A stretch of 64,000 nucleotides of DNA from Macrostomum lignano (taxonomy: Eukaryota): assembly GCA_002269645.1 (NCBI GenBank), contig NIVC01002767.1, positions 78,205-142,204 of the forward strand. Direction: 5' to 3'. Every line of letters starts with the position of its first letter. Position 1 is the first letter of the stretch. The position numbers and the translations under genes are program-made. The notes below the pieces were generated by a model that searched no databases, had not been told where the DNA came from, and worked only from the letters and a program-made list of their open reading frames with translations. Below, in pieces: positions 1-51,083 of this stretch.

Positions 1-6133
<6,133 letters not shown>

Positions 6134-7962: not shown

Positions 7963-8378
7963 ACTGCTTGTGACACTCGTGAGACACACTGCTTGTGACA
8001 CTCGTGAGACATACTGCTTGTGACACTCGTGAGACACACTGCTTGTGACACTCGTGAGACATACTGCTTGTGACACTCGTGAGACGCACTGCTTGTGACA
8101 CTCGTGAGACACACTGCTTGTGACACTCGTGAGACAGACTACTTGTGACACTCGTGAGACAGACTACTTGTGACACTCGTGAGACACACTGGTTGTGACA
8201 CTCGTGAGACAGACTACTTGTGACACTCGTGAGACACACTGCTTGTGACTCTCGTGAGACAGACTACTTGTGACACTCGTGAGACACACTGGTTGTGACA
8301 CTCGTGAAACACTGCCTGTGACACTCATGAGACACACTGCTTCTGACACTCGTGAGACACTGCTTCTGACACTCGTGA
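7963..8378. repeat. 25-bp minisatellite (GCTTGTGACACTCGTGAGACACACT)n
   Basis: Tandem units downstream of the RPL35A stop. Confidence 0.93.
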
Positions 8379-8545
8379 GCTATTTGACGCCAGCCAGCAA
8401 CCAGAGAAAAAAATTGAAAGCAGTTAAGGCTTCTACCAAAAAAGTATTTCATGAATTTTTTTACTCCAAAGCCCAAACCAGCCATTTCGCTTAGTGTATT
8501 TGAAATTCAGTCCAAGGCCAGTGAGGGGCGGTCAGTCGGGCGCAG

Positions 8546-21416: not shown

Positions 21417-24400
21417 TTAGAAGCTGGCCTCGAAAGCGGCTTTAGTCTTGCTGGGAGCCTCGGGAGTGACCACAGTCACCGGGGCGAACGGATTCTCGCT
21501 GGATTGTAGGTAATTCTGAAATTTTTAACAGATTAGATATATTGGAAGACTATATAAGGCTTTAATGCTATCAAATACGTCAGGATAGAACAGTCAGCTA
21601 AGCGATCTCACGTGAGCATAGCTCAGGGCGTTGCGACGCTCAGCCACGGAGGCCTCCTTGCCAACGTAAACGTAGACTTCGAATCCATTGTCAATGATGA
21701 ATACGTCCTTAAATATATAGAAGATTGTGTCATGCAGATTTGAAAAATCAACTGCGCACGATACTACTTACAACCCTGTTGAGTAAGTAGTGTGTAAAAC
21801 CAATAACTTAAATAAAAAACTCACCTCTTCAGTGATGCCGCCGCGATCGAGTGACTCTGACTGAATCTGGTCGAACTGCAGATTGCCCGACTCGTCGGAC
21901 AGTCTGTAAGACAAGGGTGAAAATTCGGGAGTGACAATTACAGAGTGACAATCCTGGAGTGAAAAATCGGGAGTGACAATTGCAGTCACAATCCTGGAGT
22001 GAAAAGTCGGGAGTGACAATCCTGGAGTGAAAAGTCAGGAGTGACAATTTCAGAGTGACAATCCTAGAGTGAAAAGTCGGGAGTGACAATTACAGAGTGA
22101 CAATCCTGGAGTGAAAAATCGGGAGTGACAATTGCAGTCACAATCCTGGAGTGAAAAGTCGGGAGTGACAATCCTGGAGTGAAAAGTCAGGAGTGACAAT
22201 TGCAGAGTGACAATCCTAGAGTGAAAAGTCGGGAGTGACAACTGCAAAGTGACAATCCTGGAGTGAAAATTGCAGAGTGACAATCGAAAAAGCACTCGCC
22301 TGAGCATCCGCTTCTGTCCAGAGCGGCTCTGCTGCGATCCAAACGGGTTCGAGTCGGCCGGATCCGCCTCCTCTTCGGTAAGTGACGAGTAGAATTCGTG
22401 CTGAATTGAGCGAGTATTGATTTTCTAATTATAGTGAATTTGATTATTAGCAGCATTCATGGCTTTTTATGGCTCAAATTCACTCACATTGGGATCGGCG
22501 CTGTCCTCTTCAATGACCTCGCAGGACAGGCGTCCGTTCCGCTCGCTCTTGAGTCCCTGCAGGTACTGGGCAGCTTTGAACCGCTCGTTCTTATTGGCCC
22601 CGCTGCTGTTCCACTGGATGGCCCGGTCGCCAAGGTCGAGAATGTACACGTCGGTGTTGTCAAGCGATTTGCGCGACTTTGACACCTCCCAAACTACGAT
22701 GTTTTGGCGTTCGCCCTGATGTAGGGGTATGGGGTTTGCATTTTTAGATACGATAACGATACCAGTAAGGATCGAAAGTACCACAGACTTTAAGTACTTT
22801 TGACTAAAATTACACCAGACTGAAAGTACATCAGACCAAAAGTACAATAGACGGAAAGTACATCAGACTAAAAGTACATCAGACTAAAATTACACCAGAC
22901 TGAAAGTACATCAGACCAAAAGTACAATAGACGGAAAGTACATCAGACTAAAAGTACATCAGACTAAAAGTACACCAGACTAAAAGTACACCAGACTAAA
23001 AGTACATGACTGGAAGTACACCAGACCAAAAGTACACCAGACTAAAGTACACAATACTGAAACTACATCCGACTGAAAATACACTTGATGTAACTATATG
23101 CCACCTTAAAGTGCAGCAGCCTAGGCTTGTACTCGCGAGTTTTAACGCTGCGAAATCCGCTCGGACAGCCGCCGGCCAGGTAGGTGATCTCAGGAAAGTA
23201 GCTGCGCATCAGGCGACTCTCGTGGCCTTGAACCTCGCGGTGCTGCACAGGCAGGTCGTCTAGCAGAGTGTCCAGCTCCACAGTCTTGTAGGCGGCGGTG
23301 CCGTACTCATCAGCCGTGCTCTCCTTGCCAATCCAGAAGTGCACATCGTAGCAGAGCTTGTCCTGCTCCATATAGGCGTTCAGAATAATGTAGGAGTCGC
23401 CGCTATAGAATTTGCCGTACAATTCTTTGGGCCATTCGACAACTTTGAAGTTCTAGAAAAGGAAAAAGTAATAAAGTAAATATGAAATCACTATCCAACT
23501 GACTACTGAAAGTAACAGTTTGGGAAAGGCAAAGCAACGATTATATATTTTAGTTGAAACCGAACGGAACACCCCACTGAGGAGCATGACTGCAGTACAT
23601 CTCCAGGTTTAGAAATCCTGCTGCCACAGGCCGTTCCTCCATAGACAACGCAAAGTCTGGGGTTGGTAGAAAGGCCCTAATTCTAGGTGTCTAAAGCTTA
23701 ATTAGGTCGCTATAAGCTCAAATGCCCGTGTTACGAGTAAAACCCGATAAAAATGACACCTTGGCCAAGAAGCATCCCAAGAGTCAGTTCCGTCGCCTCA
23801 GAGTCGTTGCAGGTCACACAGGTAAAATAGAAAAGAATTGACTCTAGAGACGACTTTAAAACGACGATATGTCACGGTACAAGTAGCCAAAAAGTCGTCA
23901 AAGAGTGCCTAAGAGTCAATTTAAGGAGTGCCTTATTGTCTGCGACTCTGGGGTATCTGAGGCGTGTTGGAGTCGCTGTAGAATCACTGAGTAGCATCTA
24001 AAGCGCATCTGCGTCATTTTATGCATCAGCTAGCAGAATCGCATTTAGCATTCATCATGACAACTCTATTTAGTCTACTTCAGTTAGTAGACAGTTAAGC
24101 GCTAAAACTGGCGGCTCTTTTACGATTCTGAAACTCGCTTAATGCACTCGTGACTCAACAGTCCCTCTTTTTCGCATTTCAGCCGTTAAAAGTCACAAGA
24201 ATCGTCCCAGAATCGCTAGTAGTGAGTTGTTTTTCAACCCGTTGTTTTCAACGGGGAAAAACAGAAAGGGTTGCTTTATTAAATACTCGCCTCAATTCGC
24301 CAGACGTACAGTTGAGGCCGCCTGTTCTCAAGTACTGGCGCCCAGGCCCGCTCCTTCTCGGCGGACTCCTCTGAAAAGTGCAAATTTCAAGTCACTGAAG

Positions 24401-26542: not shown

Positions 26543-28949
26543 TCACGTGGCGTGCCTTAACGGCATCAGGAAGGTGGCAAAGTGCTCGTACACCACGAAG
26601 GTGATGCAGCAGGCCGGAGTCACTCTCAGCAGGGTTGGCAGCAAGCCTTTGTAGAAGCCGCGCCAGCCTTCAACGGCTAGAAGGTCGCGGCAGACGCGGA
26701 GGGCGCCGCGCGACTCCCTGTGCTGCTCCTGCAGGCGGGACCTGACCACCTGGTAGGGATAAGTGGTGGCCGCGGCCACAATCTTGGAGAGGGCGGCGCA
26801 GCCCAGGTACACTAGGGTGGGCAGCTTGGCGTTCGCGGCCAGCTGATAGGCGGATGTGTACTGGTTCTTCATCTTCTCGTACACCAGAAACTGGATGGCG
26901 CCGTGGGAGACGCCGAACAGGCCGGGCAAGTAGCCCTGGTTGAGTGAGGCAACGCAGAAGTTTGCGTACGTCAGGATTCAAAGTCTAGGATATTCGACAA
27001 CCCGGAATTATTGATAGATATCTGCTAACATACTCCGATAGATAAATTTATATGCCAACTACGAGCTACCCTATTAATCTATCTACCAACTAACCCACTA
27101 ATCTATTTACCAATAAACCCACTAATCTACCGATTAACCTACTAATCTATCTACCAATCAACCTACTAATATATCTATTGTACCATTTAACCCACTAATC
27201 TATCTATTGTACCAATTAACCTACTAATCTATCTACCAACTAACCCACTAATCTATCTACCAATTAACCTACTTATCTACCAATTAATCTACTAATCTAT
27301 CTACCAATTAACCTACTTATCTACCAATTAATCTACTAATCTATCTACTAATTAACCTACTCATCTATCTACCAATTAACCTACTCATCTATCTACCAAT
27401 TAACCTACTTATCTATCTACCAATCAACCTACTAATCTATCTATTGTACCATTTAACCCACTAATCTATCTATTGTACCAATTAACCCACTAATCTATCT
27501 ACCAATTAGCCTACTTATCTACCAATTAATCTACTAATCTATCTACCAATTAACCTACTTATCTACCAATTAATCTACTAATCTATCTACTAATTAACCT
27601 ACTCATCTATCTACCAATTAACCTACTCATCTATCTACCAATTAACCTACTAATCGATCTACTTTATTTACCTACTAATCGATCTACCAGTGAACCTACT
27701 AATCTATCTACCAATTAACCTACTTATCTACCAATTAATCTACTAATCTATCTACTAATTAACCTACTCATCTATCTACCAATTAACATTCTCATCTATC
27801 TACCAATTAACCTACTTATCTATCTACCAATCAACCTACTAATCTATCTATTGTACCATTTAACCCACTAATCTATCTATTGTACCAATTAACGTACTAA
27901 TCTATCTACCAATTAACCTACTAATTTATCTAACAATTAACCTAATCATCTATCTACCAAATAACCTACTAATCGATCTACTTTATTTACCTACTAATCG
28001 ATCTACCAGTGAACCTACTAATCAATCTACCAATTAACCTACCAATCTATCTACCATTTAACCTACTAATCGATCTACTAATTAACCTACATATCGATCT
28101 ACTAATAAACCTACTAATCTGTCTATCAACTAACCTATCAACCAAACAATATATCAACTTAGAAGTCAATAATAATCAAAGCTAAATGCCGCAGTCTCCC
28201 AAGACTCCCTCCCACCTTGTACAGCCCGGGCAGACCCTCCAGCCGGGCGATGCTGTACAGAGCGTGCAGCATGCCCCTGTAGCGATGCGCCGCTACCGAG
28301 GCGTCAGATCCCAGGCCGTACTGCAGGCACAGCCGGGTCTTGCACACCCAGATAGGGTTGGTGAACATCAGCGTGACCGCGCCGGACGCCGCTGCCGCTC
28401 CCATCAAGTGTCCGGCTGGCAGACGGGCTGTCCGGTCGCCGCCCTGCAGCTGCACCTTGGCGGCCTCGTAGAACAGGAAGTACAGACCCCAGCTGGCGCC
28501 CGCGCCCCACAGGTTCGGCACCACCCCGGCGTACAGGCCTGTCAGGCCCTGCGTCCGGTAGATGCTGGACAGCGCGTGCATCAGGCCGCGGTACACCGGC
28601 CGGGAGCTGGGACGGCCGCTGGCGCCGACTCCTTCGTCCACCTGGTTGGGGTGGGGGTGGTGAGTCATTGGGGATCAGAGACTTCCGCATCGACTAATTC
28701 TATTGAGCACTACTGGTTGTATCTCTATGTAGTAATTCATTGGGATACCTTCGCTACCTGATACTTGAGAACTCTTGAAAGCTTGAGAACTCTCACCTGG
28801 AAGCGAATCTTGACCAGGTCAAGCGGGTGCAAGGCCAGTGTGGACAGCAGGCCGCCAGCCACGCCGGCCGCCATGTTCTCCCAGTGCACGTTGCTTAGCA
28901 ACTGACGCTGCCAGCTGTCGGAGCCGTTGCTACTGCTGCCCGACTGCAT
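26543..28949 (-). CDS. SLC25A32: Mitochondrial folate/FAD carrier, 3 exons, ~320 aa
   Basis: Exons 28949(or 28943)-28797, 28641-28216, 26935-26543. Carrier motifs HPLDLVKIRFQ, NPIWVCKTRLCLQY and YPYQVVRSRLQ; GVVPNLWGAGASWGLYFLFY, GLFGVSHGAIQFLVYE and GFYKGLLPTLLRVTPACCITFVVYE match SLC25A32. Confidence 0.93.
27060..28140. repeat. AT-rich compound repeat (ACCAATTAACCTACTAATCTATCT) in SLC25A32 intron 2
   Basis: Degenerate tandem units. Confidence 0.9.
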
Positions 28950-29024
28950 TGTGAGCAGGAAAAGCAAGAGTCATATTGGCCAGAGGCTCATGAGGAAATT
29001 CTCTTCAGTTGATCCAGTGCTCAT

Positions 29025-29750
29025 GGGAGATTTTCCCTCTGTTGATCCAGGGCTCATGGGAGATTTTCCCTCTGTTGATCCAGGGCTCATGGGAGATTTT
29101 CCCTCTGTTGATCCAGTGCTCATGGGAGATTTTCCCTCTGTTGATCCATGGCTCATGAGGAGAATTTGGTTGATCCAGGGCTGATAGGGGGGATTTACCT
29201 CAGTTGATCCAGGGCTCATAGGGGGAATTATGCTTAGTTGATCCAGAGCTTATGGGGGGAATTTCGCTTGGTTGATCCAGGGCTGATAGGGGGGATTTAC
29301 CTCAGTTGATCCAGGGCTCATAGGGAGGATTTCCCTTAGTTGATCCAGGGCTCATAGGGGGGAATTATGCTTGGATGATCCAGGGCTCATGGGGGGAATT
29401 TCCCTTAGTTGATCCAGGGCTCATGGGGGAATTTCTCTTAGTTGATCCAGGGCTTATGGGGGGAATTTCGCTTGGATGATCCAGGGCTCAAAGGGGGGAT
29501 TTCCCTTAGTTGATCCAGGGCTCATAGGGGGAATTATGCTTGGATGATCCAGGGCTCATGGGGGGAATTTCCCTTAGTTGATCCAGGGCTCATGGGGGAA
29601 TTTCCCTTAGTTGATCCAGGGCTTATGGGGGGAATTTCGCTTGGATGATCCAGGGCTCAAAGGGGGGATTTCCCTTAGTTGATTGAGGGCTCATGGGGGG
29701 AATTTCCCCAGTTGATTTAGGGCTCCCGAGGGGAATTTCCCCAGTTGATC
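29025..29750. repeat. ~33-bp minisatellite (GTTGATCCAGGGCTCATGGGGGAATTTCCCTTA) upstream of SLC25A32
   Basis: Tandem units. Confidence 0.9.
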
Positions 29751-30098
29751 TAGGAGTCCAGCTATTGAAACTGACCCTGTGCGATATTTAGATTAAGGTT
29801 TAGTTATATACCTGTAGAAATTCTAAAAACTCAAAGCCAAAGGCTGTGGCAGAACCAATAAGAAAAGACACGCAAATCTGCTTTGCTCGGACGCCATAAA
29901 TCAATCAATTGATTTATTATCTGAATACAGATATATAGCGTGTTACACGAGACAATTAAATGCCACTTGAGATGTTTAAACATTGTAGCGTATGCAGAGT
30001 TAATTCTAGAATCGCGACTAAAACTAAACAGATTTCAAATTTTTTGCAACATATACTACTGATTGTAATAAGAACCAGCATTAGAGTCCTTCATTTGA

Positions 30099-31063
30099 TT
30101 AATAAGTTGACTCGTCCAACTGCACGTCGAAGCTGATGTCGACCATTTCCTCTTCTTCAACCGGTTTCAACCAGTTCAGCCGCAGGTTGGCCTGCCTGTT
30201 GGTGCGCGCCTCAGCGTCGGCTGCGGCATTGGCGCCCTCCGCCTGGCTGTCCGCCGGGCCGCGCCGCTCCTGATAAAATATTATAGCCGACATGTCGATC
30301 CGAGAGCCGACGGACACGTAGGGCAGGTAGCTGGGCAGGTTGACCCCGCCGCCAAATACATAGTGATTGACAGTTGACTCGGCCCAGCGCCAGCTGCCGC
30401 CCGGGTTCACCTTTCTGTAGAGCTTCTTTGTGCACAGAATGAACCGGCAGCCCCGGTTGTTGGCTTGGAATATCTGCCAATTGGATGGGGAGGGGCTGTT
30501 GGAGCATGGACCACTGGGAGTAAAATGGACTGAATACAAATGCAAGGACTACTGAGAGTAGAATGGATTGGACGCTTGAATGCAAGGACCACTGCGAGTA
30601 GAATGGACTGGACACTTGATTGCAAGGACCACTGCGAGTATGATGGACTAGACACAAATACAAGGACCACTGCGAGTATGATGGACTAGACACAAATGCA
30701 AGGACCACTGCGAGTATGGACTGGACACTTATATGCAAGGACCACTGCGAGTATGATGGACTGGAAACTTGAATTCAAGGAATCAAGGATTCAAGAAATT
30801 TAAACAATTGAGATAATAATTCTATCCATGAAAACCGAATGCGTTACCTTGGTAACGGTACCCCGCAGCCTAATTTCGTTATAGTCGCGCGGAGCGGCGG
30901 CCCGAAGCTCGCCGCCTTCGCTTCCAGGCTGTCGTCTACTGCGATTATCGCTGTAGTTCTTGCCATCCCAAGTGTACAAGCCGGCTGTGAGTAGCTGAAG
31001 CCGCTGAGGCTGCTGCTGCTGAAGTAGCTGACGGGCGATTGACTTGTAAGCCGCTGAGAGCAT
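30099..31063 (-). CDS. Divergent mitochondrial SSB-like OB-fold protein, paralog 2; 2 exons, ~196 aa
   Basis: Exons 31063-30848 (donor GTAACG) and 30473-30099. Presequence-like N-terminus; RDYNEIRLRGTVTK..CRFILCT..YVSVGSRIDMSAIIFYQ aligns with SSB (SLNRVHLLGRV..FSLAT..YVKKGSRIYLEGKI) and with paralog 1. Confidence 0.65.
30505..30780. repeat. ~40-bp repeat (TGCAAGGACCACTGCGAGTATGATGGACTAGACAC..) in the paralog 2 intron
   Basis: About 7 degenerate units. Confidence 0.85.
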
Positions 31064-31161
31064 GGCACTTGCGTGCGAGCGTGTCTACATGCAGTAGAGA
31101 GTCGTGCAGACAATGCGATTTTTTAAGGATAGGGATCAATCAATTATTGTCTATACCTCAC

Positions 31162-31935
31162 TTGTTGGCCCCTCGGTGAGCTGCCCGCTACCCACTGCTG
31201 CTGATCCTCCAGTGAGCTGCCCGCTACCCCCTGCTGATGATCCTTCAGTGAGCTGCCCGCTACCCCCTGCTGCTGATCCTCCAGTGAGCTGCCCGCTACC
31301 CCCTGCTGCTGATCCTTCAGTGAGCTGCCCGCTACCCCCTGCTGCTGATCCTTCAGTGAGCTGCCCGCTACCCCCTGCTGCTGATCCTCCAGTGAGCTGC
31401 CCGCTACCCCCTGCTGCTGATCCTTCAGTGAGCTGCCCGCTACCCCCTGCTGCTGATCCTTCAGTGAGCTGCCCGCTACCCCCTGCTGCTGATCCTTCAG
31501 TGAGCTGCGCGCTACCCCCTGCTGCTGATCCTTCAGTGAGCTGCCCGCTACCCCCTGCTGCTGATCCTTCAGTGAGCTGCCCGCTACCCCCTGCTGCTGA
31601 GCTGCCCGCTACCCCCTGCTGCTGAGCTGCCCGCTACCCCCTGCTGCTGAGCTGCCCGCTACCCCCTGCTGCTGATCCTTCAGTGAGCTGCCCGCTACCC
31701 CCTGCTGCTGAGCTGCCCGCTACCCCTGCTGCTGATCCTTCAGTGAGCTGCCCGCTACCCCCTGCTGCTGAGCTGCCCGCTACCCCCTGCTGCTGAGCTG
31801 CCCGCTACCCCCTGCTGCTGAGCTGCCCGCTACCCCCTGCTGCTGAGCTGCCCGCTACCCCCTGCTGCTGATCCTTCAGTGAGCTGCCTGCTACCCCCTG
31901 CTGCTGATATCCTCCAGTGAGCCCGCTCCCCCCGC
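31162..31935. repeat. 36-bp minisatellite (GTGAGCTGCCCGCTACCCCCTGCTGCTGATCCTTCA)n between the two SSB-like genes
   Basis: Tandem units with shorter variants. Confidence 0.95.
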
Positions 31936-32270
31936 TGCTGATCCTCCAGTGGTCCTCAGAAAAGAAATAGATTATAAAGCAATTATAAAACAAACGCAGT
32001 TATTCTAACTAAAAAGCCTGTGCAATGCAACAGTTATATATTAATAGATCAATATATACGAGGCCAATATAACAATATTTTTGCATGACTCCAGGCGGGT
32101 AAAGTTTGAAGAAATGCTCGCCAATATTGTTTTTCTTATAAGTAGTATTGAAGCATCTTGTTGTTCTTATTTTTATACGCGTCGAAATTTGAAACCTACG
32201 TAATCATCAGGCTTAGATTAAACACTCCCCTCCTTAGTAAAACAAAACAATTCATCGAAATGCGACCGCA

Positions 32271-33092
32271 TCAGTTGCCCTCGGCTGGCTCCGACCAGGG
32301 GTCCCGATCATCCGCGGCCCGACCGCCCGATCGACTGGAGCGGTCAGAGCCGCCGCGCCTGCCTTCGCCAGAGTCGTCGCCATCGTCCCAGCTGTCGCGA
32401 TCGCGGCGCTGCCTCCACTGCCGCTGCGGCTGGCGCTGGTCAGCAAAGGAGCCGCCAACACCCGAATTGGCGATGGGGGCGAGTCGGGTCATGCGAATCA
32501 CCGGCTCGAACTGCGGCCGGTCAGGCTGCTGCTGCTGCTGCCCATCGACGGCGTTGGTGGCTTCGTCGCCAGCCGGCCGACGAACAAACCGATTAGCCAG
32601 GTGGCCGACCACCTCGACCCGGCTGCCCGGGTACAGGTGCTGCTGCCAGTCCGGCTCGCCAGCCTCAGCGGAGCCGCCGCCTTCGAACTCGCCATCGGCC
32701 AGGCCGGCTGACCTGCCGGGGCCGGCGGTCCGCGCGATCACCAGGTGGGAGATTCGCTCCTGCCGGACCTGCGGCTGCTGGTCGCTGCCGGGCTCCGCCG
32801 GCCGGACCAGGCGCTGGTTCTGAGTTGACAGCAGGAACGAGGCCCACTGGGCGCTCAAATTCAGCACCTTGGAGACTCGGCCGACTAGACGAACTTCGTT
32901 GAAGTCCAAGGCTACTCGACGGATATTCTGCTGAGGCTGCTGGGGCGGCGAGGAGCTGTCTGCTGCGTCAGACGCGGCGACGTGGAACCGCGCAGAGGAG
33001 CTGGAGAAGGCAGCTCGCCTGAGCAGGCCGGCCAAGGGAGCGGCGAGGCGGCTGCAGCCAACCGGGAGGGTGCAGAGGCGCAGGGGTGCCAT
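32271..33092 (-). CDS. Divergent mitochondrial SSB-like OB-fold protein, paralog 1; single exon, 273 aa
   Basis: Arg/Leu/Ala/Ser-rich presequence-like N-terminus; LDFNEVRLVGRVSK..WASFLLSTQ..ISHLVI..QHLYPGSRVEVVGHLANR..EPVIRMTRL follows the SSB OB-fold pattern; long Asp/Arg/Gly-rich tail. Confidence 0.72.
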   Translation of the reverse strand: MAPLRLCTLPVGCSRLAAPLAGLLRRAAFSSSSARFHVAASDAADSSSPPQQPQQNIRRVALDFNEVRLVGRVSKVLNLSAQWASFLLSTQNQRLVRPAEPGSDQQPQVRQERISHLVIARTAGPGRSAGLADGEFEGGGSAEAGEPDWQQHLYPGSRVEVVGHLANRFVRRPAGDEATNAVDGQQQQQPDRPQFEPVIRMTRLAPIANSGVGGSFADQRQPQRQWRQRRDRDSWDDGDDSGEGRRGGSDRSSRSGGRAADDRDPWSEPAEGN

Positions 33093-33394
33093 GAGATTGG
33101 ATTGGGCAGTGAAAGGCTCAGGAGCTCATTGTGGCGGCAGCAACCAATTTTTTTGCACCTATATTTTAACTTACTGTGTTGCACTATATCAAACTTATTT
33201 TAAAAAGAGAGAAGAACAGAGTGAACGGGCATCGGCCTAATTGGCTAATTTTGTTAAAAATGGTTCTATAAGAGAACGCATGTTTCACCAAAAATTAGAT
33301 AGTTGCTAATTAGATAGGTTTACATACAACTTTAGAAGTGGTAGTAGTTCGTCACATAGGATTTTCAAAAAATATTTTATTATTTGAGTCTCTT

Positions 33395-33460
33395 TGGTAG
33401 TAGTAGTACTAGTAGTAGTAATATTAGCAGTAGTAGTAGTAGTATAAGTAATAGTAGTAG
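33395..33460. repeat. (TAG)n microsatellite, degenerate
   Basis: Seen directly. Confidence 0.75.
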
Positions 33461-34069
33461 TACAAGCCTTATTAGTTATGAATTTGTAAGCTAAAAATCT
33501 AAACTCAAGAAACGCCATCCTAACATACGTAGCACTATATATTTTAAGCCGCCACTAGAGAAATCCATAGAGTTACTCGTAACTGGAAAACTGAATTGAA
33601 ATTAAAAATGATGAAAAATCAAACAACACAAGTGTTAAGTTAGCGAGAGTTCAGCTTGTACTTTCAACGCTTTTTTTGGCTGTCAACATCAATATGTACC
33701 AGACACCAGCGGGAACTTACAATCAGCAACTTTATACAAAAATATTGAACAGAAAGAGGGCGGGAGAAGCATTAAAAATTAACCAACGTAAGATCTGCGT
33801 AGCTTTAGGAAACGCCTAGAGGGATGCAAAAAAACCAAGCGAAGAAAAAAATTGGGAAGAATTAAAAGGCTCGAGAATATTCCAAGAAATGTTCCTTAAT
33901 CCTACCAACTGTTTTACTGCCAACTAATTTAAAGTCAAGCAATAAAGATATGCATTACAAAGGTTTAAAGTTACTTGTAAATGAATGAAGGCACAGTGCA
34001 TATCGTAGACTCGGAATTCCAGCGGGGTTTAGGGGAATCCCTGATTTCTAGGGAAACCTAAATTTTGAT

Positions 34070-34680
34070 GGGAATTCCGAGTTAAAGGGGAATCCCTACT
34101 GTCAATGATAATTCCGAGTTAAGGGGAACCCCTAGTGTCGATGGGAATTCCGAGTTAAGGGAAATCCCTAGTGTCGATGGGAATTCCGAGTTAAGGGGAA
34201 TCCCTAGTGTCGATGGGAATTCCGAGTTAAGGGAAATTCCCTAGTGTCAATGGGAATTCCGAGTTAAGGGGAATCCCTAGTGTCAATGGGAATTCCGAGT
34301 TAAGGGGAATCCCTAGAGTCAATAGAATTCCGAGTTAAGGGAATCCCTAGTGTCGATGGGAATTCCGAGTTAAAGGGAAATCCCTAGTGTCGATGGGAAT
34401 TCCGAGTTAAGGGAAATCCCTAGTGTCAATGGGAATTCCGAGTTAAGGGGAATCCCTAGTGTCGATAGAATTCCGAGTTAAGGGAATCCCTAGTGTCAAT
34501 GGGAATTCCGAGTTAAGGGGAATCCCTAGTGTCGATAGAATTCCGAGTTAAGGGAATCCCTAGTGTCGATGGGAATTCCGAGTTAAGGGAATCCCTAGTG
34601 TCGATGGAAATTCCGAGTTAAAGGGAATCCCTAGTGTCGATGGGAATTCCGAGTTCAAGGGCATCCTCAGTGTCGATGGG
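34070..34680. repeat. ~36-bp minisatellite (GGGAATTCCGAGTTAAGGGGAATCCCTAGTGTCGAT)n
   Basis: Tandem units in the MFSD14-SSB spacer. Confidence 0.92.
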
Positions 34681-35437
34681 AATCCGAAATGCTTTAAGTA
34701 GGAATTGTCACAAAGTCCCAATTTGCACGGCGGCGTCTTCGTTCGCGGATAAATAACAGACTATCAATACAGACAGGTGTAATGATAATTAAGTTGCGCA
34801 GTCGATATAATTTTTTGTTTCAATTGGGTGCCCGTGCAAGGCAGCCAGAGAGGAAGCAATTAGAGTTCGGAAACGGCAGCAAGCTGGCAGTTTTGCAGTA
34901 GACGGGCTTTCACAAGAAACTCAAACAAATCAAACGCAGTAAAGAATGCCTGTGCCAAAAAGAACATGAAAATCAACGAGAATAATTTCAATATTTAATA
35001 AATCCTCAATTGCAAAGCAAATATAAGCCAAAATGAATGAAGACAGTCCTACCTACACAGATAAAATGTACAAACAAATGAATTAATTAACCCGGAAACC
35101 AAAAATACCGCGGACCAAAACGTGAATGATATAAAAATTATACACGTATGCAGAATGATGATGATGAGGCTGGAATGCTGGGGCGGAGAAGCACGCAGCG
35201 GTTAATTTTTTATGCACTGTTTTGAAGCATCTTCGTAGTGAGCGGAAAATAACATCTGTTCTGAACTTACAAGCGCAGTTGATAATTCTTTCAAATAAGC
35301 GGAAAGAGCTCTGTTTAAAATTCAAATCCTTTCGAACTGAGGTCGAACTTGGCTTACAAAATTGAATCAAAGCAACGGTTAAGCAAAGAGAAATAGCCGG
35401 TTTGACATAAAAAACTTCAAATCAAACTGAATCCTGT

Positions 35438-37736
35438 TCAACTGCTCGAAGAGGCCCCGGCGCCAGCGGATGACGAGCCCGCGGTGGCTGCCGAAGTCGC
35501 CGAGGTCGCCGCCTGCTGCTCGGGATCGTCATCGTCAGTGGCTGAAAATTTTTTAATATTGGATTTTCAGGGCACTGAAGAGAGGGTGTCAGATACTGTG
35601 AATAGGGTGTCAGATACTGTGAATAGGGTGTCAGAGACTGTGAATAGGGTGTCAGATACTGTGAATAGGGTGTCAGATACTGTGAATAGGGTGTCAGATA
35701 CTGTGAATAGGGTGTCAGATATTGTGAATAGGGTGTCAGATATTGTGAATAGGGTGTCAGATACTGTGAATAGGATGTCAGATACTGTGAATAGGGTGTC
35801 AGATACTGTGAATAGGGTGTCAGATACTGTGAATAGGGTGTCAGATACTGTGAATAGGGTGTCAGATACTGTGAATAGGGTGTCAGATACTGTGAATAGG
35901 GTGTCAGATACTGTGAATAGGATGTCAGAGACTGTGAATAGGGTGTCAGAGACTGTGAATAGGGTGTCAGATACTGTGAATAGGGTGTCAGATACTGTGA
36001 ATAGGGTGTCAGATACTGTGAATAGGGTGTCAGATGCTGTGAATAGGGTGTCAGATGCTGTGAATAGGGAGTCAGATACTGTGAATAGGGTGTCAGATAT
36101 TGTGAATAGGGTGTCAGATACTATGAATAGGATGTCAGATACTGTGAATAGGGTGTCAGATACTGTGAATAGGGTGTCAGATACTGTGAATAGGGTGTCA
36201 GATACTGTGAATAGGGTGTCAGATATTGTGAATAGGGTGTCAGATACTATGAATAGGATGTCAGATACTGTGAATAGGATGTCAGATACTTTGAATAGGG
36301 TGTCAGATACTATGAATAGGATGTCAGATATTGTGAATAGGATGTCAGATACTGTAAATAGGGTGTCAGATACTGTGAATAGTGTGTCAGATACTGTGAA
36401 TAGTGTGTCAGATACTGTGAATAGTGTGTCAGATACTGTGAATAGGGTGTCAGATACTGTGAATATGGTGTCAGATACTGTGAAAAGGGTGTCAGATACT
36501 GTGAATAGGGTGTCAGATACTGTGAATATGGTGTCAGATACTGTGAATAGGGTGTCAGATGCTGTGAATAGGATGTCAGATACTGTGAATAGGGTGTCAG
36601 ATACTGTGAATATGGTGTCAGATACTGTGAATAGGATGTCAGATGCTGTGAATAGGGTGTCAGATGCTGTGAATAGGGAGTCAGATACTGTGAATAGGGT
36701 GTCAGATATTGTGAATAGGGTGTCAGATACTATGAATAGGATGTCAGATACTGTGAATAGGGTGTCAGATACTGTGAATAGGGTGTCAGATACTGTGAAT
36801 AGGGTGTCAGATACTGTGAATAGGGTGTCAGATATTGTGAATAGGGTGTCAGATACTATGAATAGGATGTCAGATACTGTGAATAGGGTGTCAGATACTA
36901 CGAATAGGGTGTCAGATATAGAGAATTGGGTGTCAGATGCAGAGAATCGGGGGTCAGGCACTCACCCAATCTGTGATAGTTAATAACTAAGCTGGGCGTC
37001 CGCCTGTGCCCGTCGCCCGGCTTGACGCTGATGTTGATGCTGGAGTGCGGGTTGTCGGGGATCAGCACGGACACCAGGATGGCCAGCAGCACCAGCACGG
37101 CTCCGAAAGCGAACGGCGGGCCTGGCATGATGGCCTTGTTGAAGTTGTGCATTCGCTGCTGCCAGCTCAGGGCGGTGACGCCTGCCGATGCGACCTGGAA
37201 GTTTATGGCAGATAAAATCCTTTTCGTTTAATATGGGCTGCCCAACAGCAAATCAAAACAGTCTCTCTACTGATTTAACCTATTGGGATTTGGAAAATTA
37301 TTGGATATTTAAACCTCTGTAGAATTCGATGCTAGATAGTCTGGGAGGCATGGATTAAGTAACAGATAGACAGACAGACACTATGACGCAAGAAGGGCAG
37401 ACACTAAAACGCAAGAGAAACGATGCTAAGACTGACAGATGGACAGACAGACATACAGACAAACAGACAGACAGAAACAGGCAGACAGAAACAGACAGAC
37501 AGAAAGACAGACAGACAGAAACAGGCAGACAGACAGAAACAGGCAGACAGACAGACAGACAGAAACAGACAGACAGACAGAAACAGACAGTCAGACAGAC
37601 AGACAGACAGACAGACAGAAACAGGCAGACAGACAGAAACAGGCAGACAGACAGAAACAGACAGACAGACAGAAACAGACAGACAGACAGAAACAGACAG
37701 ACAGACAGACAGACAGACAGAAACAGACAGACAGAA

Positions 37737-37767
<31 letters not shown>

Positions 37768-40700
37768 GGCAGGCAGGCAGGCAGACAGAGAAAAAGACAG
37801 CAGAGAAGGACACTAGAAAGTCTAGAAGGACACAAGCAGACACAAGGCAGACGCAAGTCAGACACCCCTAAAAGAAGCAGACCAACCGTAGCAGCTGCAG
37901 TCCGATTGGCGGCGCCAGCCAGGCCGGGAATGAGCGGCGAGGAGGCCATTTTAGGCGCGTCATTTAAGTCCACCTCGAACACGTAGAAGATGAAGCCGAA
38001 CAGGGCCGGGCCGAGGCCGTTGCACAGGCCGCGGATGCCGGTCAGGATGCCCTGGGCGACGCCCTGCTGGTCCTGCTCGGCGTGGTTGGACACGAAGGCG
38101 GAGATGGCCGGGTAGGTGATGCTGCCCAGAGCGGCCAGGCAGCCGGCCAGCCAGAGCAGGAAAGTCTTAGAGGAGAATCCGTAGATGCCCATCTGCAGCA
38201 TGTGGAACACCAGGCCAATCATGATTGTCCGCTTCGGGCCGCAGTGCTTGATTAAAAAGCTCAGGCCGGCTGTCTGGGCAATGCAGGACAGAATGCCCAC
38301 AACGCAGATGAAATACGCCACGCCCTCCTCTGAGAAGCCCATGATGAGGCGAAGGTAGACAAAGAAGCAGGTGTACTCGCCGGCCTCGGGCAGGTAGCTC
38401 AGAAAGGTGGTGATGCACAGCATCAGAATGAGCTGGTCGGCGCCCATCTTGCGCAGCGAGGAGAACGGATCGGCCTTGGCCCAGCTGATCTGCGAGCCCC
38501 AGGCAACGCAGCGGTTCTTCTCTGATAGGGACTCTGGCACCACCTGCGGGCGGGGGTTCGATTCCGGCTTTTATTGTCTGACTTTATAGCCTCTTTAAGC
38601 ATCTGTTTACTATAGGATTGCAGCCTGTTTATGCATCTGTTTACTATGAGGTTGCAGCTTGTTTATGCATCTGTTTACTATGAGATTCCAGCCTGTCGAT
38701 GCATCTGTTTACAGTGGGATTGCAGCCTGTTTAAGCATCTGTTTACTATGAGATTCCAGCCTGTTTATGCATCTGTTTACTATGAGATTCCAGCCTGTTT
38801 ATGCATCTGTTTACTATGAGATTCCAGCTTGTTGATGCATCTGTTTACAGTGGGATTGCACCCTGTTTAAGCATCTGTTTACTATGAGATTCCAGCCTGT
38901 TTCAAAGCTGAGTAAAAATCCCAAAGCTCAAGAATTGCAGCCCGCAGTCTCACTGTCAGTATAAAGAAGATGTCCAGCAGAGCCACAAACGTGGCCAGAG
39001 CCACTACAAAGTTGTCGCTATACAATTTGCCCAGGTGGGCGCCAATTGCCGGAGAAGTGATGAGGCTGGCAGCGAAGCTGGCCGAGACGAGGCCGTAGGC
39101 CCAGCTGCGGTCCTCCTCGGTGGTCACGTCCGACACGTAGGCGAACACAACGGAGAAGGTGACGGAGAAGATGCCGGACACGGTGATCAAAGTGAAGTAC
39201 CACCAGTGTGACACGTGCATAAAGGGGATTGGGGAACAGGTGAAAAACACCGTCACCAATAGAAAAGTTTTGCGGCCGAACACGTCTGACAGAGCGCCGA
39301 CCAGGGGAGCGGCCAGGAAGGAGAGGAAGCCCTGCAATGAGTTTAAGTTTCGCAGTACATACGCTATTGAACTACTACTTGTTATTCAGTAGCAATCAAT
39401 TGTGAAGCAATCAGTTGGAGTATCAATTTTGCTGAGACTTTACAAGCTCGAAGCTTCACAAGCTCGAAGCTTCACAAGCTCGAAGCTTCACAAGCTCGAA
39501 GCTTCACAAGCTCGAAGCTTCACAAGCTCGAAGCTTCACAAGCTCGAAGCTTCACAAGCTCGAAGCTTCACAAGCTCGAAGCTTCACAAGCTCGAAGCTT
39601 CACAAGCTCGAAGCTTCACAAGCTCGAAGCTTCACAAGCTCGAAGCTTCACAAGCTCGAAGCTTCACAAGCTCGAAGCTTCACAAGCTCGAAGCTTCACA
39701 AGCTCGAAGCTTCACAAGCTCGAAGCTTCACAAGCTCGAAGCTTCACAAGCTCGAAGCTTCACAAGCTCGAAGCTTCACAAGCTCGAAGCTTCACAAGCT
39801 CGAAGCTTCACAAGCTCGAAGCTTCACAAGCTCGAAGCTTCACAAGCTCGAAGCTTCACAAGCTCGAAGCTTCACAAGCTCGAAGCTTCACAAGCTCGAA
39901 GCTTCACAAGCTCGAAGCTTCACAAGCTCGAAGCTTCACAAGCTCGAAGCTTCACAAGCTCGAAGCTTCACAAGCTCGAAGCTTCACAAGCTCGAAGCTT
40001 CACAAGCTCGAAGCTTCACAAGCTCGAAGCTTCACAAGCTCGAAGCTTCACAAGCTCGAAGCTTCACAAGCTCGAAGCTTCACAAGCTCGAAGCTTCACA
40101 AGCTCGAAGCTTCACAAGCTCGAAGCTTCACAAGCTCGAAGCTTCACAAGCTCGAAGCTTCACAAGCTCGAAGCTTCACAAGCTCGAAGCTTCACAAGCT
40201 CGAAGCTTCACAAGCTCGAAGCTTCACAAGCTCGAAGCTTCACAAGCTCGAAGCTTCACAAGCTCGAAGCTTCACAAGCTCGAAGCTTCACAAGCTCGAA
40301 GCTTCACAAGCTCGAAGCTTCACAAGCTCGAAGCTTCACAAGCTCGAAGCTTCACAAGCTCGAAGCTTCACAAGCTCGAAGCTTCACAAGCTCGAAGCTT
40401 CACAAGCTCGAAGCTTCACAAGCTCGAAGCTTCACAAGCTCGAAGCTTCACAAGCTCGAAGCTTCACAAGCTCGAAGCTTCACAAGCTCGAAGCTTCACA
40501 AGCTCGAATCTAAACTTCAAAAGCCCCAAACTTCAAAAGCTACTCACCTTCACGCCTTGAATAAGGCCGTTCATAAGGAATTTATGCGCCGGAAACGTCT
40601 CCTCGAGCACGTTGATCATGGGATTAGTGAGCAGGCCCCAGGCGAAGAATTCTAGGAATATCACGATTAGAGCGTGATAAACTGACGGCTTCTGAAAGAA

Positions 40701-45865: not shown

Positions 45866-48800
45866 GGCCCGTCTGCCTGTCTGTCTATCTGTCTGCCTGC
45901 CTGCCTGTCTGACACAATCATGAAGTGAACAGTGACACAATATTGTAGACAACAGGCGATGTCTTCCTGTCTGTCTGTCTATCTGCCCGTTCGTCTGTCT
46001 ATCCATTAATTTTAAAAAGCAAGCCACTGCACCCCGAGCAACTAACCTGTGTATAACAGATTTATAGACGGAATCCTTGGTCATAAAGTTCAAGCAGTAC
46101 TCTTTAACGGGCACTTGGCCCAATTCGCTAGCCCGCTCGTAGGTCACAACAACATTGCGATCGTTGATGCAGGACTCCAGATACTGCGTGACAACGTGCT
46201 GCAGCCTGGACATCTGGAACTGCAGGGCCAGCTGGTAGACCTGCATCATCAGCAGGATAGTGGCCGTGTTCTGCATGTCCTCGGCATTCTCGACCGGCTG
46301 CAGCTGGTCGGTGTACACAAAGGACAGAATCAGGCGGAAGGCGGTGGGATCGGTCTCGGGCAGACGGACACGCAGAGGACCGGACTGCGGCTGCTGGCCG
46401 GCCGCCTGCTGAGCCGCCGCCTGACGGGCCTCGCGAATTCGATTGATGAGAAAGCAGGACCTGCGGGCAGGGGTGGGTCAGTTTCTTAGAACCCCATTGG
46501 CATACTGTTAAGTCCCATGTTTCTAAGAATCTTATTGCCTAATCCCATATTTCTAAGAATCTTATTGCCTAATCCCATATTTCTAAGAATCTTATTGCCT
46601 AATCCCATATTTCTAAGAATCTTATTGTTTAATTCCATATTTCTAAGAATCTTATTGTCTTAATCCCATATTTCTAAGAATCTTATTGTCTTAATCCCAT
46701 ATTTCTAAGAATCTTATTGCCTAATCCCATATTTCTAAGAATCTTATTGCCTAATCCCATATTTCTAAGAATCTTATTGCCTAATCCCATATTTCTAAGA
46801 ATCTTATTGCCTAATTCCCATATTTCTAAGAATCTTATTGCCTAATCCCATATTTCTAAGAATCTTATTGCCTAATTCCCATGTTTCTAAGAATCTTATT
46901 GTTTAATTCCATATTTCTAAGAATCTTATTGCCTAATTCCCATGTTTCTAAGAATCTTATTGTTTAATTCCATATTTCTAAGAATCTTATTGCCTAATTC
47001 CCATGTTTCTAAGAATCTTATTGTTTAATTCCATATTTCTAAGAATCTTATTGCCTAATCCCATATTTCTAAGAATCTTATTGCCTAATTCCTATGTTTC
47101 TAAGAATCTTTTAGCAATACAATTTTGACTTTTAAAATTTCATAAATATGCCCTTATAGAACCCTATTGACAAATCCGATATATCCAAGAATTTTATTAC
47201 ACAATCTAAATATTTCGGCCACATTCCATTAGAAACCCTCTTCCCTACCAGCTCAAAATCTAAAAAATATAAGCATTCCCCAGACCAATAAGATACAATA
47301 AAACTCAAGCCGCACCTGGCAGCCAGGAAGCACTGGTGCGCCATGATCGACTGCTTATCAGGGCCAACAAGGAACTCAACATCGCACAGCATGTTACTCT
47401 GCAACAGTCTGCCAAAATCGTCCTGCAGCGTGCAGCGGGGATAGCTGGACAGCTGGATTCTGTACATGTCGCCGCTGAATAGGTTCTTTTCAACATTGCC
47501 GCCGAATATGTACATGCTGGAGTCCACCAGCACTGCGCTGTGGTACAGCCGGCCGTCTGGTACGCGACTGCCTGCAGTTGCAGTGGATGGATTTAACAGC
47601 TTTCAGATCACTCTGATAGTTCTTATAGCCTGTCTTCTTCACCATCCAGTTCTCTTCTTCCCCCTCTAGTTCTTTTTCTTTACCCTCGAGTTCTCTTCTT
47701 TACCCTCCAGTTCTCTTCTTTACCCTCCAGTTCTCTTCTTTACCCTCCAGCTCTTTTCTTTACCCTCCAGCTCTCTTCTTTACCCTCCAGTTCTCTTCTT
47801 TACCCTCCAGTTCTCTTCTTTACCCTCGAGTTCTCTTCTTTACCCTCCAGTTCTCTTCTTTACCCTCCAGTTCTCTTCTTTACCCTCCAGCTCTTTTCTT
47901 TACCCTCCAGCTCTCTTCTTTACCCTCCAGTTCTCTTCTTTACCCTCTAGTTCTCTTCTTCACCATCCAGTTCTCTTCTTTACCCTCTAGTTCTCTTCTT
48001 CACCCTCCAGTTCTCTTCTTCACCCTCCAGTTCTCTTCTTCACCCTCTAGTTCTCTTCTTTACCCTCCAGTTTAACCCCGCAATGGGCCAAAATGGGCCA
48101 ATCCCAAAAAGCAACGAACCAGCGGCGGGCTCCACAGTGGACCAGGTTTTATCATCCAGATCGTAGCTAAACAGCTGGTTCATAACGGACGAGCCGGTCA
48201 CGCCGCCGAACACAAACAGGTGCCGGCCGTAGCTCAGCATAGAGTGGCCGAACACTTTCTCCGGCGCGGGGGCTACGCAGCCCAGCACGTTGTCGCGATT
48301 GATAACCGACCAGTGGCTGCTGGAGAAGTCGTATTGGTAAAGCTTGTTAGAGGACTTGCTGCCGCTCTCGCCGCTAAATACGAACAGAGTGTCCCTGCAG
48401 ACCTGCGGGTTTTTTAGGGCGTTTAATACGAGACTATTTATAGTAAGCTGGAAGGCGGATGTGCAGATTAAATAAACTTTATATAGTACAAGAGATAATA
48501 AATGTGAGCCTGCCAGTTATAAAATATTTCACAACAAAGATTCGGACATATATTCAGGCACTGGATGAGACACTGCGACTGTCGCTGTGACATGTGACAA
48601 TATGAGGCACTGGCTGTGACTACAATATGAGGTACTGACTGTGACTACAATATGCGGCACTGACTGTGACTACAATATGCGGTACTGACTGTGACTACAA
48701 TATGCGGTACTGACTGTGACTACAATATGCGGCACTGACTGTGACTACAATATGCGGCACTGACTGTGACTACAATATGCGGTACTGACTGTGACTACAA

Positions 48801-51083
48801 TATGCGGTACTGACTGTGACTACAATATGAGGCACTGACTGTGACTACAATATGAGGTACTGACTGTGACTACAATATGCGGCACTGACTGTGACTACAA
48901 TATGCGGCACTGACTGTGACTACAATATGCGGTACTGACTGTGACTACAATATGCGGCACTGACTGTGACTACAATATGAGGTACTGACTATGACTACAA
49001 TATGCGGCACTGACTGTGACTACAATATGCGGCACTGACTGTGACTACAATATGCGGTACTGACTGTGACTACAATATGCGGCACTGGCTGTGACTACAA
49101 TATGCGGTACTGACTGTGACTACAATATGCGGCACTGGCTGTGACTACAATATGAGGCACTGGCTATGACTAAAATGAGGCACTGGCTGTGACTGCAATA
49201 TGCGGCACTGGCTATGACTACAATATGCGGTACTGACTGTGACTACAATATGCGGCACTGGCTGTGACTACAATATGCGGTACTGACTGTGACTACAATA
49301 TGCGGCACTGGCTGTGACAACAATATGAGGCACTGGCTATGACTAAAATGAGGCACTGGCTGTGACTGCAATATGCGGCACTGGCTATGACTACAATATG
49401 CGGTACTGACTGTGACTACAATATGCGGTACTGACTGTGACTACAATATGCGGTACTGACTGTGACTACAATATGCGGCACTGACTGTGACTACAATATG
49501 CGGCACTGACTATGACTACAATATGCGGCACTGACTGTGACTACAATATGCGGCACTGGCTGTGACAACAATATGAGGCACTGGCTATGACTAAAATGAG
49601 GCACTGGCTGTGACTGCAATATGAGGCACTGGCTATGACTAAAATGAGGCACTGGCTGTGACTGCAATATGCGGCACTGGCTGTGACTGCAATATGCGGC
49701 ACTGGCTATGACACAAAATGCTTCTCTCAAACCCACCGTCAGCGAGAAGTTGCACAGAGGCGGCGGCTGGGCGCCCATCTGCTGGGCCTCCTCCCAGAAA
49801 TGAACGGCCATGGGGGAGGCTCCGTAGCTGGACGGCACGGGCGTGTTCCACAGGTCGTTGAGCCGCCTGTTGCCGTCGTATCCGGCGTAGATCCACATCC
49901 TGCCGTTGTAGACAAAAGCGCAATGGGCGGTGCGCGGCACGGGCTTTGCAGACTTGGCGTCGAATTTCCACTCGGCCCAGTAGCGCGAGCCGAACCGGTA
50001 CTCGAACAGGTCGTTTTTGTTCTCTTCGCCTGTGTAGCCACCGAATATCAGCATGGAGTCGTCGGCGACCACCGCCGAGTGAGTGTAGCGGGGCGCCGGC
50101 GGGGTGCCGTTCACTGGCAGCACCTGCGTCCACGTGCGGGCTTCGATGTCGTATCTGACGGGGTGGAGGCGCGGTTAGCGAGAAATGGATTTAGTGAGAG
50201 ATTCAGGGCTGAGATCCAGAGAGATTTAGGGCTGAGATGCACAGATATTTAGGGTTGAGATTCATAGAAATTCAGGGTTAGACACCAGTCTAGAGACTCA
50301 GGGTTAGACACCAGTCTAGAGATTCAGGGTTAGACACCAGTCTAGAGACTCAGGGTGAGACACCAGTCTAGAGACTTAGGGTTAGACACCAGTCTAGAGA
50401 CTCAGGGTTAGACACCAGTCTAGAGACTCAGGGTGAGACACCAGTCTAGAGACTTAGGGTTAGACACCAGTCTAGAGACTCAGGGTTAGACACCAGTCTA
50501 GAGACTCAGGGTTAGACACCAGTCTAGAGACTCAGGGTTGGACACCAGTCTAGAGACTCAGGGTTAGACACCAGTCTAGAGACTCAGGGTTAGACACTAG
50601 TCTAGAGACTCAGGGTTAGACACCAGTCTAGAGACTCAGGGTTAGACACTAGTCTAGAGACTCAGGGTTAGACACCAGTCTAGAGACTCAGGGTTAGTGA
50701 TGGACACTTCACCTGAGCACGTCATTCAACGTAGCGCGGCCATTGTCGCCACCGAAAGCGTACAGGAAGTATCTGCCAGCCTCGATATGCGCCACCATGG
50801 TGTGCTTGCTTCGCTTGAAGTCCTCCCAGCTGCCCACCAGGCTCCAGTAGTGAACGGTGTCGGCCGGGTCGCCTTCGAATCGATGAGCAGCGGAGCCGCC
50901 GGCCGAGGACAGCGACAGGACGGAGGCGGCCGCGGCCGCTGCCCCGGTCGGGTCGGCCACGTAGCGGCTGGCGTGCGGAGCCGCGGCGGCGGCAGCAGCG
51001 GCCGAAGCCGAAGCTTGAGACTGATTGCGCAACTGGAAATTGCGAATGAGTAGCTTCTTTAAGCCAACTGTCCTGGTTGGCAT
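44379..51083 (-). CDS. LZTR1: Kelch-BTB-BACK-BTB protein LZTR1, 6 exons, ~800-814 aa
   Basis: Exons 51083(or 51032)-50713, 50154-49737, 48402-48120, 47571-47316, 46460-46047, 45081-44379 are phase-consistent. DTVHYW..RSKHTMVA..LYAFGGDNGRATLNDVLR, PAPRYTHSAVV..MLIFGGYTG..NKNDLFEY, CTLQDDFGRLLQSNMLCDVEFLVG, REFEELDKPLILEVVRRR and YSDVTLLLGEHRISAHRAVLAARCGYFEALFRSF match LZTR1. Confidence 0.95.
45150..45905. repeat. (TCTG)n compound microsatellite in LZTR1 intron 5
   Basis: Seen directly. Confidence 0.95.
46505..47105. repeat. ~30-bp minisatellite (CCCATATTTCTAAGAATCTTATTGCCTAAT)n in LZTR1 intron 4
   Basis: Tandem units. Confidence 0.93.
47640..48070. repeat. 20-bp minisatellite (TACCCTCCAGTTCTCTTCTT)n in LZTR1 intron 3
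   Basis: Tandem units. Confidence 0.95.
48600..49710. repeat. 25-bp minisatellite (ACTGACTGTGACTACAATATGCGGC)n in LZTR1 intron 2
   Basis: About 44 units. Confidence 0.95.
50275..50697. repeat. 26-bp minisatellite (CAGGGTTAGACACCAGTCTAGAGACT)n in LZTR1 intron 1
   Basis: About 16 units. Confidence 0.95.

Follow-up and report, generated by a model that had tools for sequence, protein, structure and literature searches.

A tandem pair of highly diverged SSB-fold genes in the flatworm Macrostomum lignano, one of them probably a fast-evolving mitochondrial SSB

Within a 64,000-nt stretch of the genome of Macrostomum lignano (contig NIVC01002767.1, assembly GCA_002269645.1; referred to as "the window"), two adjacent genes, here named A and B, encode proteins that are paralogs of one another and are predicted to have the oligonucleotide/oligosaccharide-binding (OB) fold of the single-stranded DNA-binding protein (SSB) family. 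The mitochondrial SSB (mtSSB; SSBP1 in human) is a core part of the animal mitochondrial DNA (mtDNA) replisome that is normally single-copy and well conserved, and we know of no diverged tandem mtSSB-like pair in any animal. The account that we favor, and consider reasonably probable, is that A and B are tandem SSB-family paralogs of which B is a working, fast-evolving mtSSB and A has taken on an altered role. The pair is a divergent new member of a known family and not a new kind of system. An earlier examination of the letters of this DNA, made without database searches (the sequence-only reading), had proposed a lineage-specific pair of this kind, and we report here how that proposal fared when gene models, homeologous copies, predicted structures and remote homology were analyzed. 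What had been seen in the letters was confirmed, and the interpretation put on it was borne out in part.

Gene Models and Relationship of A and B

The region of interest, 30099..33092 (-), ends exactly at the stop codon of B and the ATG of A (Table 1). The DNA over both genes has 100% identity to contig NIVC01002767.1, the predicted proteins match the GenBank models of the assembly, and the spliced product of B (196 aa) is 100% identical to the deposited PAA59622/P0002. The two genes lie head to tail on the minus strand, 1,207 bp apart, and a six-frame translation scan identified no further copy or pseudogene of either in the window. As the sequence-only reading had stated, one gene is intronless, A consisting of a single open reading frame (ORF), and the other is interrupted, B having one 374-nt GT..AG intron. 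In the deposited annotation only A carries the label "hypothetical protein"; B already has the automatic UniProt name "Single-stranded DNA-binding protein" (UniRef A0A1I8FYV6). The GenBank models of A (PAA59621, PAA59787) are flagged as partial and start at codon 2; the ATG at 33090-33092 directly precedes that codon, as in the 7698-8525 model of the homeologous copy L001 (see below), and is the first start codon past an in-frame upstream stop.

Alignment of A with B by BLASTP gave E=1e-6 over 40 aa, and their Smith-Waterman score of 79 was reached by 0 of 2000 shuffles (33.2±5.4). Most of this signal resides in the first 40 residues of the core (β1-β2); the remainder is weak on its own, with a score of 38 relative to 26±4.8 for shuffles, 54 of the 2000 reaching it. 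The whole of the two cores is nonetheless collinear in a MAFFT alignment, and so are all of the shared blocks that had been quoted from the letters, each of which is present: LDFNEVRLVGRVSK / RDYNEIRLRGTVTK, SFLLST / RFILCT, ISHLV / VNHYV, and HLYPGSRVEVVGHL / YVSVGSRIDMSAII. In BLASTP comparisons with the human, fly and E. coli SSBs, A and B are nearer to each other than either is to any of the three; the best match among these comparisons was that of B to human SSBP1 (E=0.018), and A had no pairwise BLASTP match to human SSBP1. Because A and B are the closest relatives of each other and stand in tandem, a lineage-specific local duplication is the simplest origin of the pair, as had been proposed.

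Predicted Structures and Remote Homology

The AlphaFold models were computed from input alignments that consisted of the A and B copies only, without any SSB sequence. The core of the A model (residues 55-215) was predicted as a five-stranded OB fold with a short helix between β3 and β4 (β1 66-79, β2 83-97, β3 108-121, helix 149-152, β4 158-170, β5 194-206), with a predicted local distance difference test score (pLDDT) of 80-87 in the strands. In a Foldseek search of the PDB its best 50 matches were without exception SSB-type OB folds (E 1e-6 to 3e-5), with template modeling scores normalized to target length (TMt) of 0.54-0.78, except for the 257-residue editosome entry 4dni at 0.32. Bacterial SSBs, those of Coxiella, Mycobacterium and E. 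coli (1eyg/1qvc), top the list, which also includes human mtSSB (1s3o/2dud/6rup), the Plasmodium falciparum SSB and Trypanosoma brucei editosome OB proteins, the latter being among the best superpositions (TMt 0.69-0.70, root-mean-square deviation 3.6 Å). The topology predicted for B is the same barrel (β1 62-77, β2 80-94, β3 101-112, helix 119-124, β4 130-143, β5 163-176), and 48 of the best 50 Foldseek matches of this model are SSB, PriB, mtSSB or Rim1 entries, the rest being T. brucei editosome chains (E 1e-3 to 2e-2). Thus the feature that marks membership of the family, a five-stranded OB barrel with a β3-β4 helix that is structurally nearest to SSB among OB families, was found in the models. 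Other OB families (RPA, Stn1, SOSS) were considered and rejected, as none of them occurs among the best 50 Foldseek matches of either model.

A profile comparison pointed in the same direction. With hhalign, the A+B alignment matched an SSB alignment at a probability of 82-84% (P about 1e-5) with a score of 39.2, the target being a narrow one composed of vertebrate SSBP1 and three sequences entered by hand (E. coli SSB, yeast Rim1 and fly mtSSB). Controls with 150 column shuffles scored 12.3±2.4 (maximum 18.6) and reversed sequences 14.6, and when aligned individually A scored 22.5 and B 21.6, in an identical and collinear register. An explanation of the resemblance as chance similarity without an OB fold was rejected on the basis of the Smith-Waterman and hhalign shuffle controls and the Foldseek matches of the A model. 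The earlier claim that both genes encode SSB-type OB folds therefore holds at the level of predicted structure: we take the fold of A to be established, and that of B is well supported by its own model, its homology to A and its automatic UniProt name.

Conserved and Replaced Residues, Insert and Termini

Several residues are common to A, B and human SSBP1, namely the Asn that starts β1, the L-x-G-x-V of β1, the F-x-L-x-T of β2 and the Arg after β2. In addition, two features occupy invariant columns of the alignment: the His of the "WH" motif (H109 in B and H116 in A, equivalent to H55 of E. coli and H85 of human) and the G-S-R at the start of β4 (G128-S129-R130 in B and GSR in A, equivalent to G105-S106-R107 of human). 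Subunit interfaces contain both E. coli SSB H55, the site of the ssb-1 mutation H55Y, and human SSBP1 R107, the site of the R107Q mutation.

The aromatic residues that stack on DNA have fared differently in the two proteins, as scored on the set W40, W54, F60 and W88 of E. coli and W65, W84 and F90 of human. The Trp of the "WH" motif (W54/W84) is replaced by N108 in B and by S115 in A, as had been noted from the letters. The equivalent of W40/W65 is Y91 in B and V96 in A, and that of F60/F90 is F112 in B, shifted by two residues, with no counterpart in A. The set is partly kept in B, where three of the four classical stacking positions have an aromatic residue in place or close by, and is largely lost in A. 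With the Trp replaced and PF00436 silent even at E<=10, neither gene is an ordinary SSBP1 with its aromatics intact. The cores also differ in net charge, which is +8 in B, +5 in human SSBP1 and -1 (neutral) in A.

One reading of the pair is that an obligate A/B heteromer, such as an A2B2 tetramer, is the functional mitochondrial SSB, with B making most of the contacts to single-stranded DNA (ssDNA) and A providing a regulatory or interaction surface, a situation that would be analogous to SSBs made of two different OB folds. We consider this unlikely. It would fit the presence of the interface His and GSR in both proteins, the complementary charge (a B core of +8 with an acidic tail and an A core of -1), the tandem co-oriented arrangement on three homeologous contigs and the occurrence of heteromeric T. 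brucei editosome SSB-like OB proteins among the best superpositions of A. However, the interface residues are equally expected in separate homotetramers, and adjacency is a plain leftover of tandem duplication. Framed more broadly, a two-gene mtSSB, in which B (DNA-binding, with an acidic tip) and A (a degenerate OB with an RGG-like tail) form a heterotetramer or A serves B as an RNA-binding or regulatory partner, likewise seems unlikely to us. A heteromer and a shift to RNA binding had both been raised as possibilities by the sequence-only reading.

The Gly/Ala-rich insert of A, which is not present in B or in canonical SSBs by alignment, has a pLDDT of <50 (model residues 69-92) and is predicted to be disordered, in the place where the helix region normally begins. 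The β4-β5 loops of both A and B exceed the usual length. The last 61 residues of A contain 12 K/R and 14 D/E in RGG, RS and D runs, and the last 18 residues of B are acidic (Table 1), so that the two tails are as the sequence-only reading had described them. That reading had also called both N-termini presequence-like, with which their composition agrees: residues 1-32 of B have 3 basic and 0 acidic residues, the N-terminus of A is likewise devoid of acidic residues, and both have a moderate helical hydrophobic moment.

Coding Evidence and Homeologous Copies

The assembly has the locus in three versions, homeologous or allelic (L001, L002 and L003/L004), and the ORFs of A and B are intact in all three. 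Gene A of the window has 100% identity to the L003/L004 copies and ~98% to those of L001 and L002. GC content at third codon positions (GC3) is 0.80 in A and 0.72 in B, relative to a GC content of 0.32-0.34 in unique flanking DNA. Between the window copy of A and each of the other loci there are 7 synonymous and 3-5 non-synonymous differences (ratio of non-synonymous to synonymous differences per site, pN/pS, 0.15-0.25), and between L001 and L002 there are 2 of each (pN/pS 0.35); the homeologs of A also differ by two Gln, a polyglutamine (polyQ) length polymorphism. For B, there are 1-2 synonymous and 0 non-synonymous differences between homeologs. The substitution counts of both genes are consistent with constraint, of which they are no proof, and together with GC3 and the ORFs that are intact in three loci they provide evidence that A and B are real genes.

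Identity between the homeologous loci is a mosaic, ranging from 92% to 100% in non-coding pieces (29760-33600 relative to L001 and L002), a pattern suggestive of gene conversion or of recombination among the copies. Identity to L001 is 100% over the 339 bp downstream of B; between the homeologous loci it is 94-95.5% in the 508 bp upstream of A and 92% in the 5' part of the B intron.

These data bear on a further explanation, in which only B matters, A being a duplicate that is non-functional or in decay. Such decay would account for the loss of most DNA-stacking aromatics and of the helix in A, its low-complexity insertions, its polyQ length polymorphism between homeologs and a core that is not basic. 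Yet the reading frame of 273 codons is unbroken in all three homeologous loci, with a pN/pS of 0.15-0.35 and a GC3 as in coding sequence, and the prediction of a complete five-stranded OB core is a confident one. We regard decay of A as very improbable.

Database Searches and Evidence Against the Favored Account

A number of results weigh against the view that A and B are SSB-family paralogs with B as a working mtSSB. Scans of both proteins with Pfam (including PF00436) and NCBIfam gave no SSB match at E<=10, the single match for B being a spurious one to T3SS_SCTL. When hidden Markov models (HMMs) of SSB were built from vertebrate SSBP1, with or without the E. coli, yeast and fly sequences, A and B scored like shuffles. 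The A+B profile retrieved no SSB from the PDB sequences, only a giardin at E=1.1, and an exhaustive HMMER scan with the same profile of 1.84 billion representatives recovered only A and B, plus three low-complexity false matches at E>=8.5e-5. The hhalign score is well over noise and under the usual level of proof, and its probability is moderate. Confidence in the model of B is low (mean pLDDT 48.7, core 65-72). The test for selection consists of a handful of substitutions, in a genome whose homeologs have mosaic identity. Mitochondrial targeting of A and B is suggested by the composition of their N-termini alone. Finally, the genome may encode a canonical SSBP1 at another locus, and B would then not be "the" mtSSB; a search with human SSBP1 for a canonical M. 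lignano mtSSB gave only vertebrate proteins among the best 120 matches listed.

Comparison of each protein with the PDB sequences by phmmer returned noise alone (an antibody light chain, a disintegrin and a plant mitoribosomal protein), and word-indexed searches of 5.8 billion clusters returned only the copies of M. lignano itself, such that no orthologs from other species were retrieved in either the 5.8-billion-cluster or the 1.84-billion-representative searches.

Another explanation is that both proteins are accessory, with a canonical SSBP1 encoded elsewhere serving mtDNA replication and the pair neofunctionalized, for example for RNA binding or as a scaffold, and possibly not mitochondrial. 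The absence of the near-universal "WH" Trp from both proteins and the lack of a Pfam match for either would be compatible with such roles, as would the RGG/RS-like tail of A, which is typical of RNA-binding proteins, and the editosome OB folds among its best structural matches. Conversely, B has a basic core with aromatics at or near 3/4 stacking positions and is accepted as an SSB by the automatic rule of UniProt. Nothing pointing to a further copy came to light, although no search of the whole genome was made. We judge a wholly accessory pair to be distinctly unlikely.

Comparison with Known SSB Systems

Of the known systems, A and B can be compared most directly with animal mtSSBs (human SSBP1, 3ull/1s3o/6rup/2dud, and that of Drosophila), with which they share one SSB-type OB domain behind a presequence-like N-terminus and the collinear elements N-x-V-x-L-x-G (β1), F-x-L-x-T (β2), x-H (β3) and G-S-R (β4), and human mtSSB is among the top Foldseek matches of both models. 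They differ from animal mtSSBs in being missed by PF00436/HMMER, in the replacement of the "WH" Trp by N (B) or S (A), in their longer β4-β5 loops and in that M. lignano has two tandem genes and not one. The acidic C-terminal tail of B, and the 27-residue insert and 61-residue RG/D-rich tail of A, are further differences, as to our knowledge animal mtSSBs are without such tails.

Bacterial SSBs (PF00436), including that of E. coli, have an equal OB topology and provide the top structural matches, with an identity of only about 10-17% in structural alignments; the equivalent of W54 is gone in both A and B. The acidic tip of bacterial SSBs recruits partner proteins, and the short acidic tail of B, with its aromatics, resembles this tip in composition, although it is without the preceding Gly/Pro/Gln-rich linker. 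The likeness is one of composition and could be a result of convergence or chance.

The T. brucei editosome OB proteins (KREPA; PDB 9dei, 4dni), which are among the best structural matches of the A model, are mitochondrial SSB-type OB folds that have diverged from ssDNA binding and act as heteromeric scaffolds and RNA binders. Their likeness to A is a structural analogy only; kinetoplastid editing is without a flatworm counterpart. Bacteria, plants and kinetoplastids have specialized SSB paralogs, and SsbA/SsbB, PriB, plant SSB1/SSB2/OSB and yeast Rim1 provide precedents for a duplicated SSB gene with a specialized role. PriB, SsbA/SsbB and Rim1 were also found in the Foldseek lists; however, SsbA/SsbB, PriB, plant OSB and Rim1 represent independent duplications in other kingdoms. 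In literature searches on mtSSB/SSBP1 of Macrostomum and flatworms we found no such tandem pair, and these searches and supplements of M. lignano papers gave nothing for Mlig002114, Mlig034073 or SSBP1.

Genomic Surroundings

The neighbors of the pair (at 37404-38543, 26543-28955, about 21417-24365 and below 20288) are all on the minus strand. The co-oriented order, MFS transporter, A, B, Mito_carr protein, gelsolin and COG8/Dor1, is the same on the three homeologous contigs, the gene next to B, a putative SLC25A32 in the sequence-only reading, belonging to the mitochondrial carrier family (Mito_carr, Pfam PF00153).

The window contains >30 minisatellite arrays with a period of about 16-50 bp and <=67 copies (e.g., 4275-5836, 35583-36957, 39438-40508, and 48597-49721), and unrelated minisatellites flank and interrupt the pair (Table 1). 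The arrays also give rise to several long but artefactual "ORFs", at 4250-5842 (in three frames), 35484-36983 (on both strands) and 39402-40655. Spurious matches of the ORF at 35484 extend to 119 Pfam families, which are mostly of the coiled-coil or repeat type. Another tandem array, with a period of 30 bp (10951-11699), lies inside the ORF for origin recognition complex subunit 3 (ORC3).

Table 1. Coordinates of genes A and B, their parts, and other features of the window.
Feature	Position	Strand	Description
Gene A	32271..33092	-	Single ORF without intron, 273 aa + stop; PAA59621/PAA59787-like "hypothetical protein"
A presequence-like N-terminus	32970..33092	-	Residues 1-41; 5 Arg, 0 acidic, Ala/Leu/Ser-rich; from composition and hydrophobic moment
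A OB core (predicted)	32457..32915	-	Residues 60-212; from AlphaFold and Foldseek
A insert	32655..32735	-	Residues 120-146, 27 aa, Gly/Ala-rich, between β3 and helix; from alignments
A tail	32271..32456	-	Residues 213-273 + stop; low-complexity, rich in Arg, Gly, Ser and Asp; three Trp
A-B spacer	31064..32270		1,207 bp, mostly a 36/25-bp minisatellite at 31176-31951 (Tandem Repeats Finder)
Gene B, exon 1	30848..31063	-	Residues 1-72: presequence-like N-terminus, linker, β1 (NEIRLRGTVTK)
Gene B, intron	30474..30847	-	374 nt, phase 0, GT..AG (GTAACG...GGCAG)
Gene B, exon 2	30099..30473	-	Residues 73-196 + stop: OB core β2 to β5, then acidic tail
B tail	30102..30155	-	Residues 179-196, EEEMVDISFDVQLDESTY; net charge -7, with Phe and Tyr
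Minisatellite downstream of B	28980-29754		34 bp
Minisatellite in B intron	30504-30781		40 bp
Minisatellite upstream of A	34067-34687		36 bp
ORC3 ORF	10343-12514	-	723 aa, uninterrupted; ORC3_N and ORC_WH_C matches

Proposed Roles of A and B

In the account that we favor, an mtSSB gene would have been duplicated locally in the lineage leading to M. lignano, and the two copies would then have diverged rapidly, past the point of detection by HMMER. B is probably a fast-evolving mtSSB; its basic core, most of the stacking aromatics, the His and the GSR would be those of a working mitochondrial ssDNA-binding protein, and its acidic tail may, like that of bacterial SSBs, serve to bind partners or to inhibit the protein itself. 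The diverged paralog A lacks an annotation. It appears to have kept the fold, the His and the GSR and has lost most of the stacking aromatics, and probably with them the classical high-affinity wrapping of ssDNA. A might serve B as a modified subunit or as a partner, act as a regulator, or have another mitochondrial role that involves nucleic acids.

The genome of M. lignano is known to be fast-evolving and duplicated, and in it are two copies in tandem whose divergence causes standard annotation to overlook A and profile HMMs to miss both; the signature Trp is gone from each. An immediate consequence is that the label "hypothetical" on gene A (PAA59621, PAA59787 and relatives) can be replaced by that of an SSB-fold protein. 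If the two-gene mtSSB considered above were true, it would be the first mtSSB system of any animal to be heteromeric or subfunctionalized, and its evolution would have accompanied the loss of the stacking Trp. If B is the sole mtSSB, it would show how much drift can be tolerated with function retained and would offer natural variants for studies of essential contacts. If A and B cooperate, or if A has a new role, the pair would represent a subfunctionalized organelle replication factor in a model animal that is capable of transgenesis.

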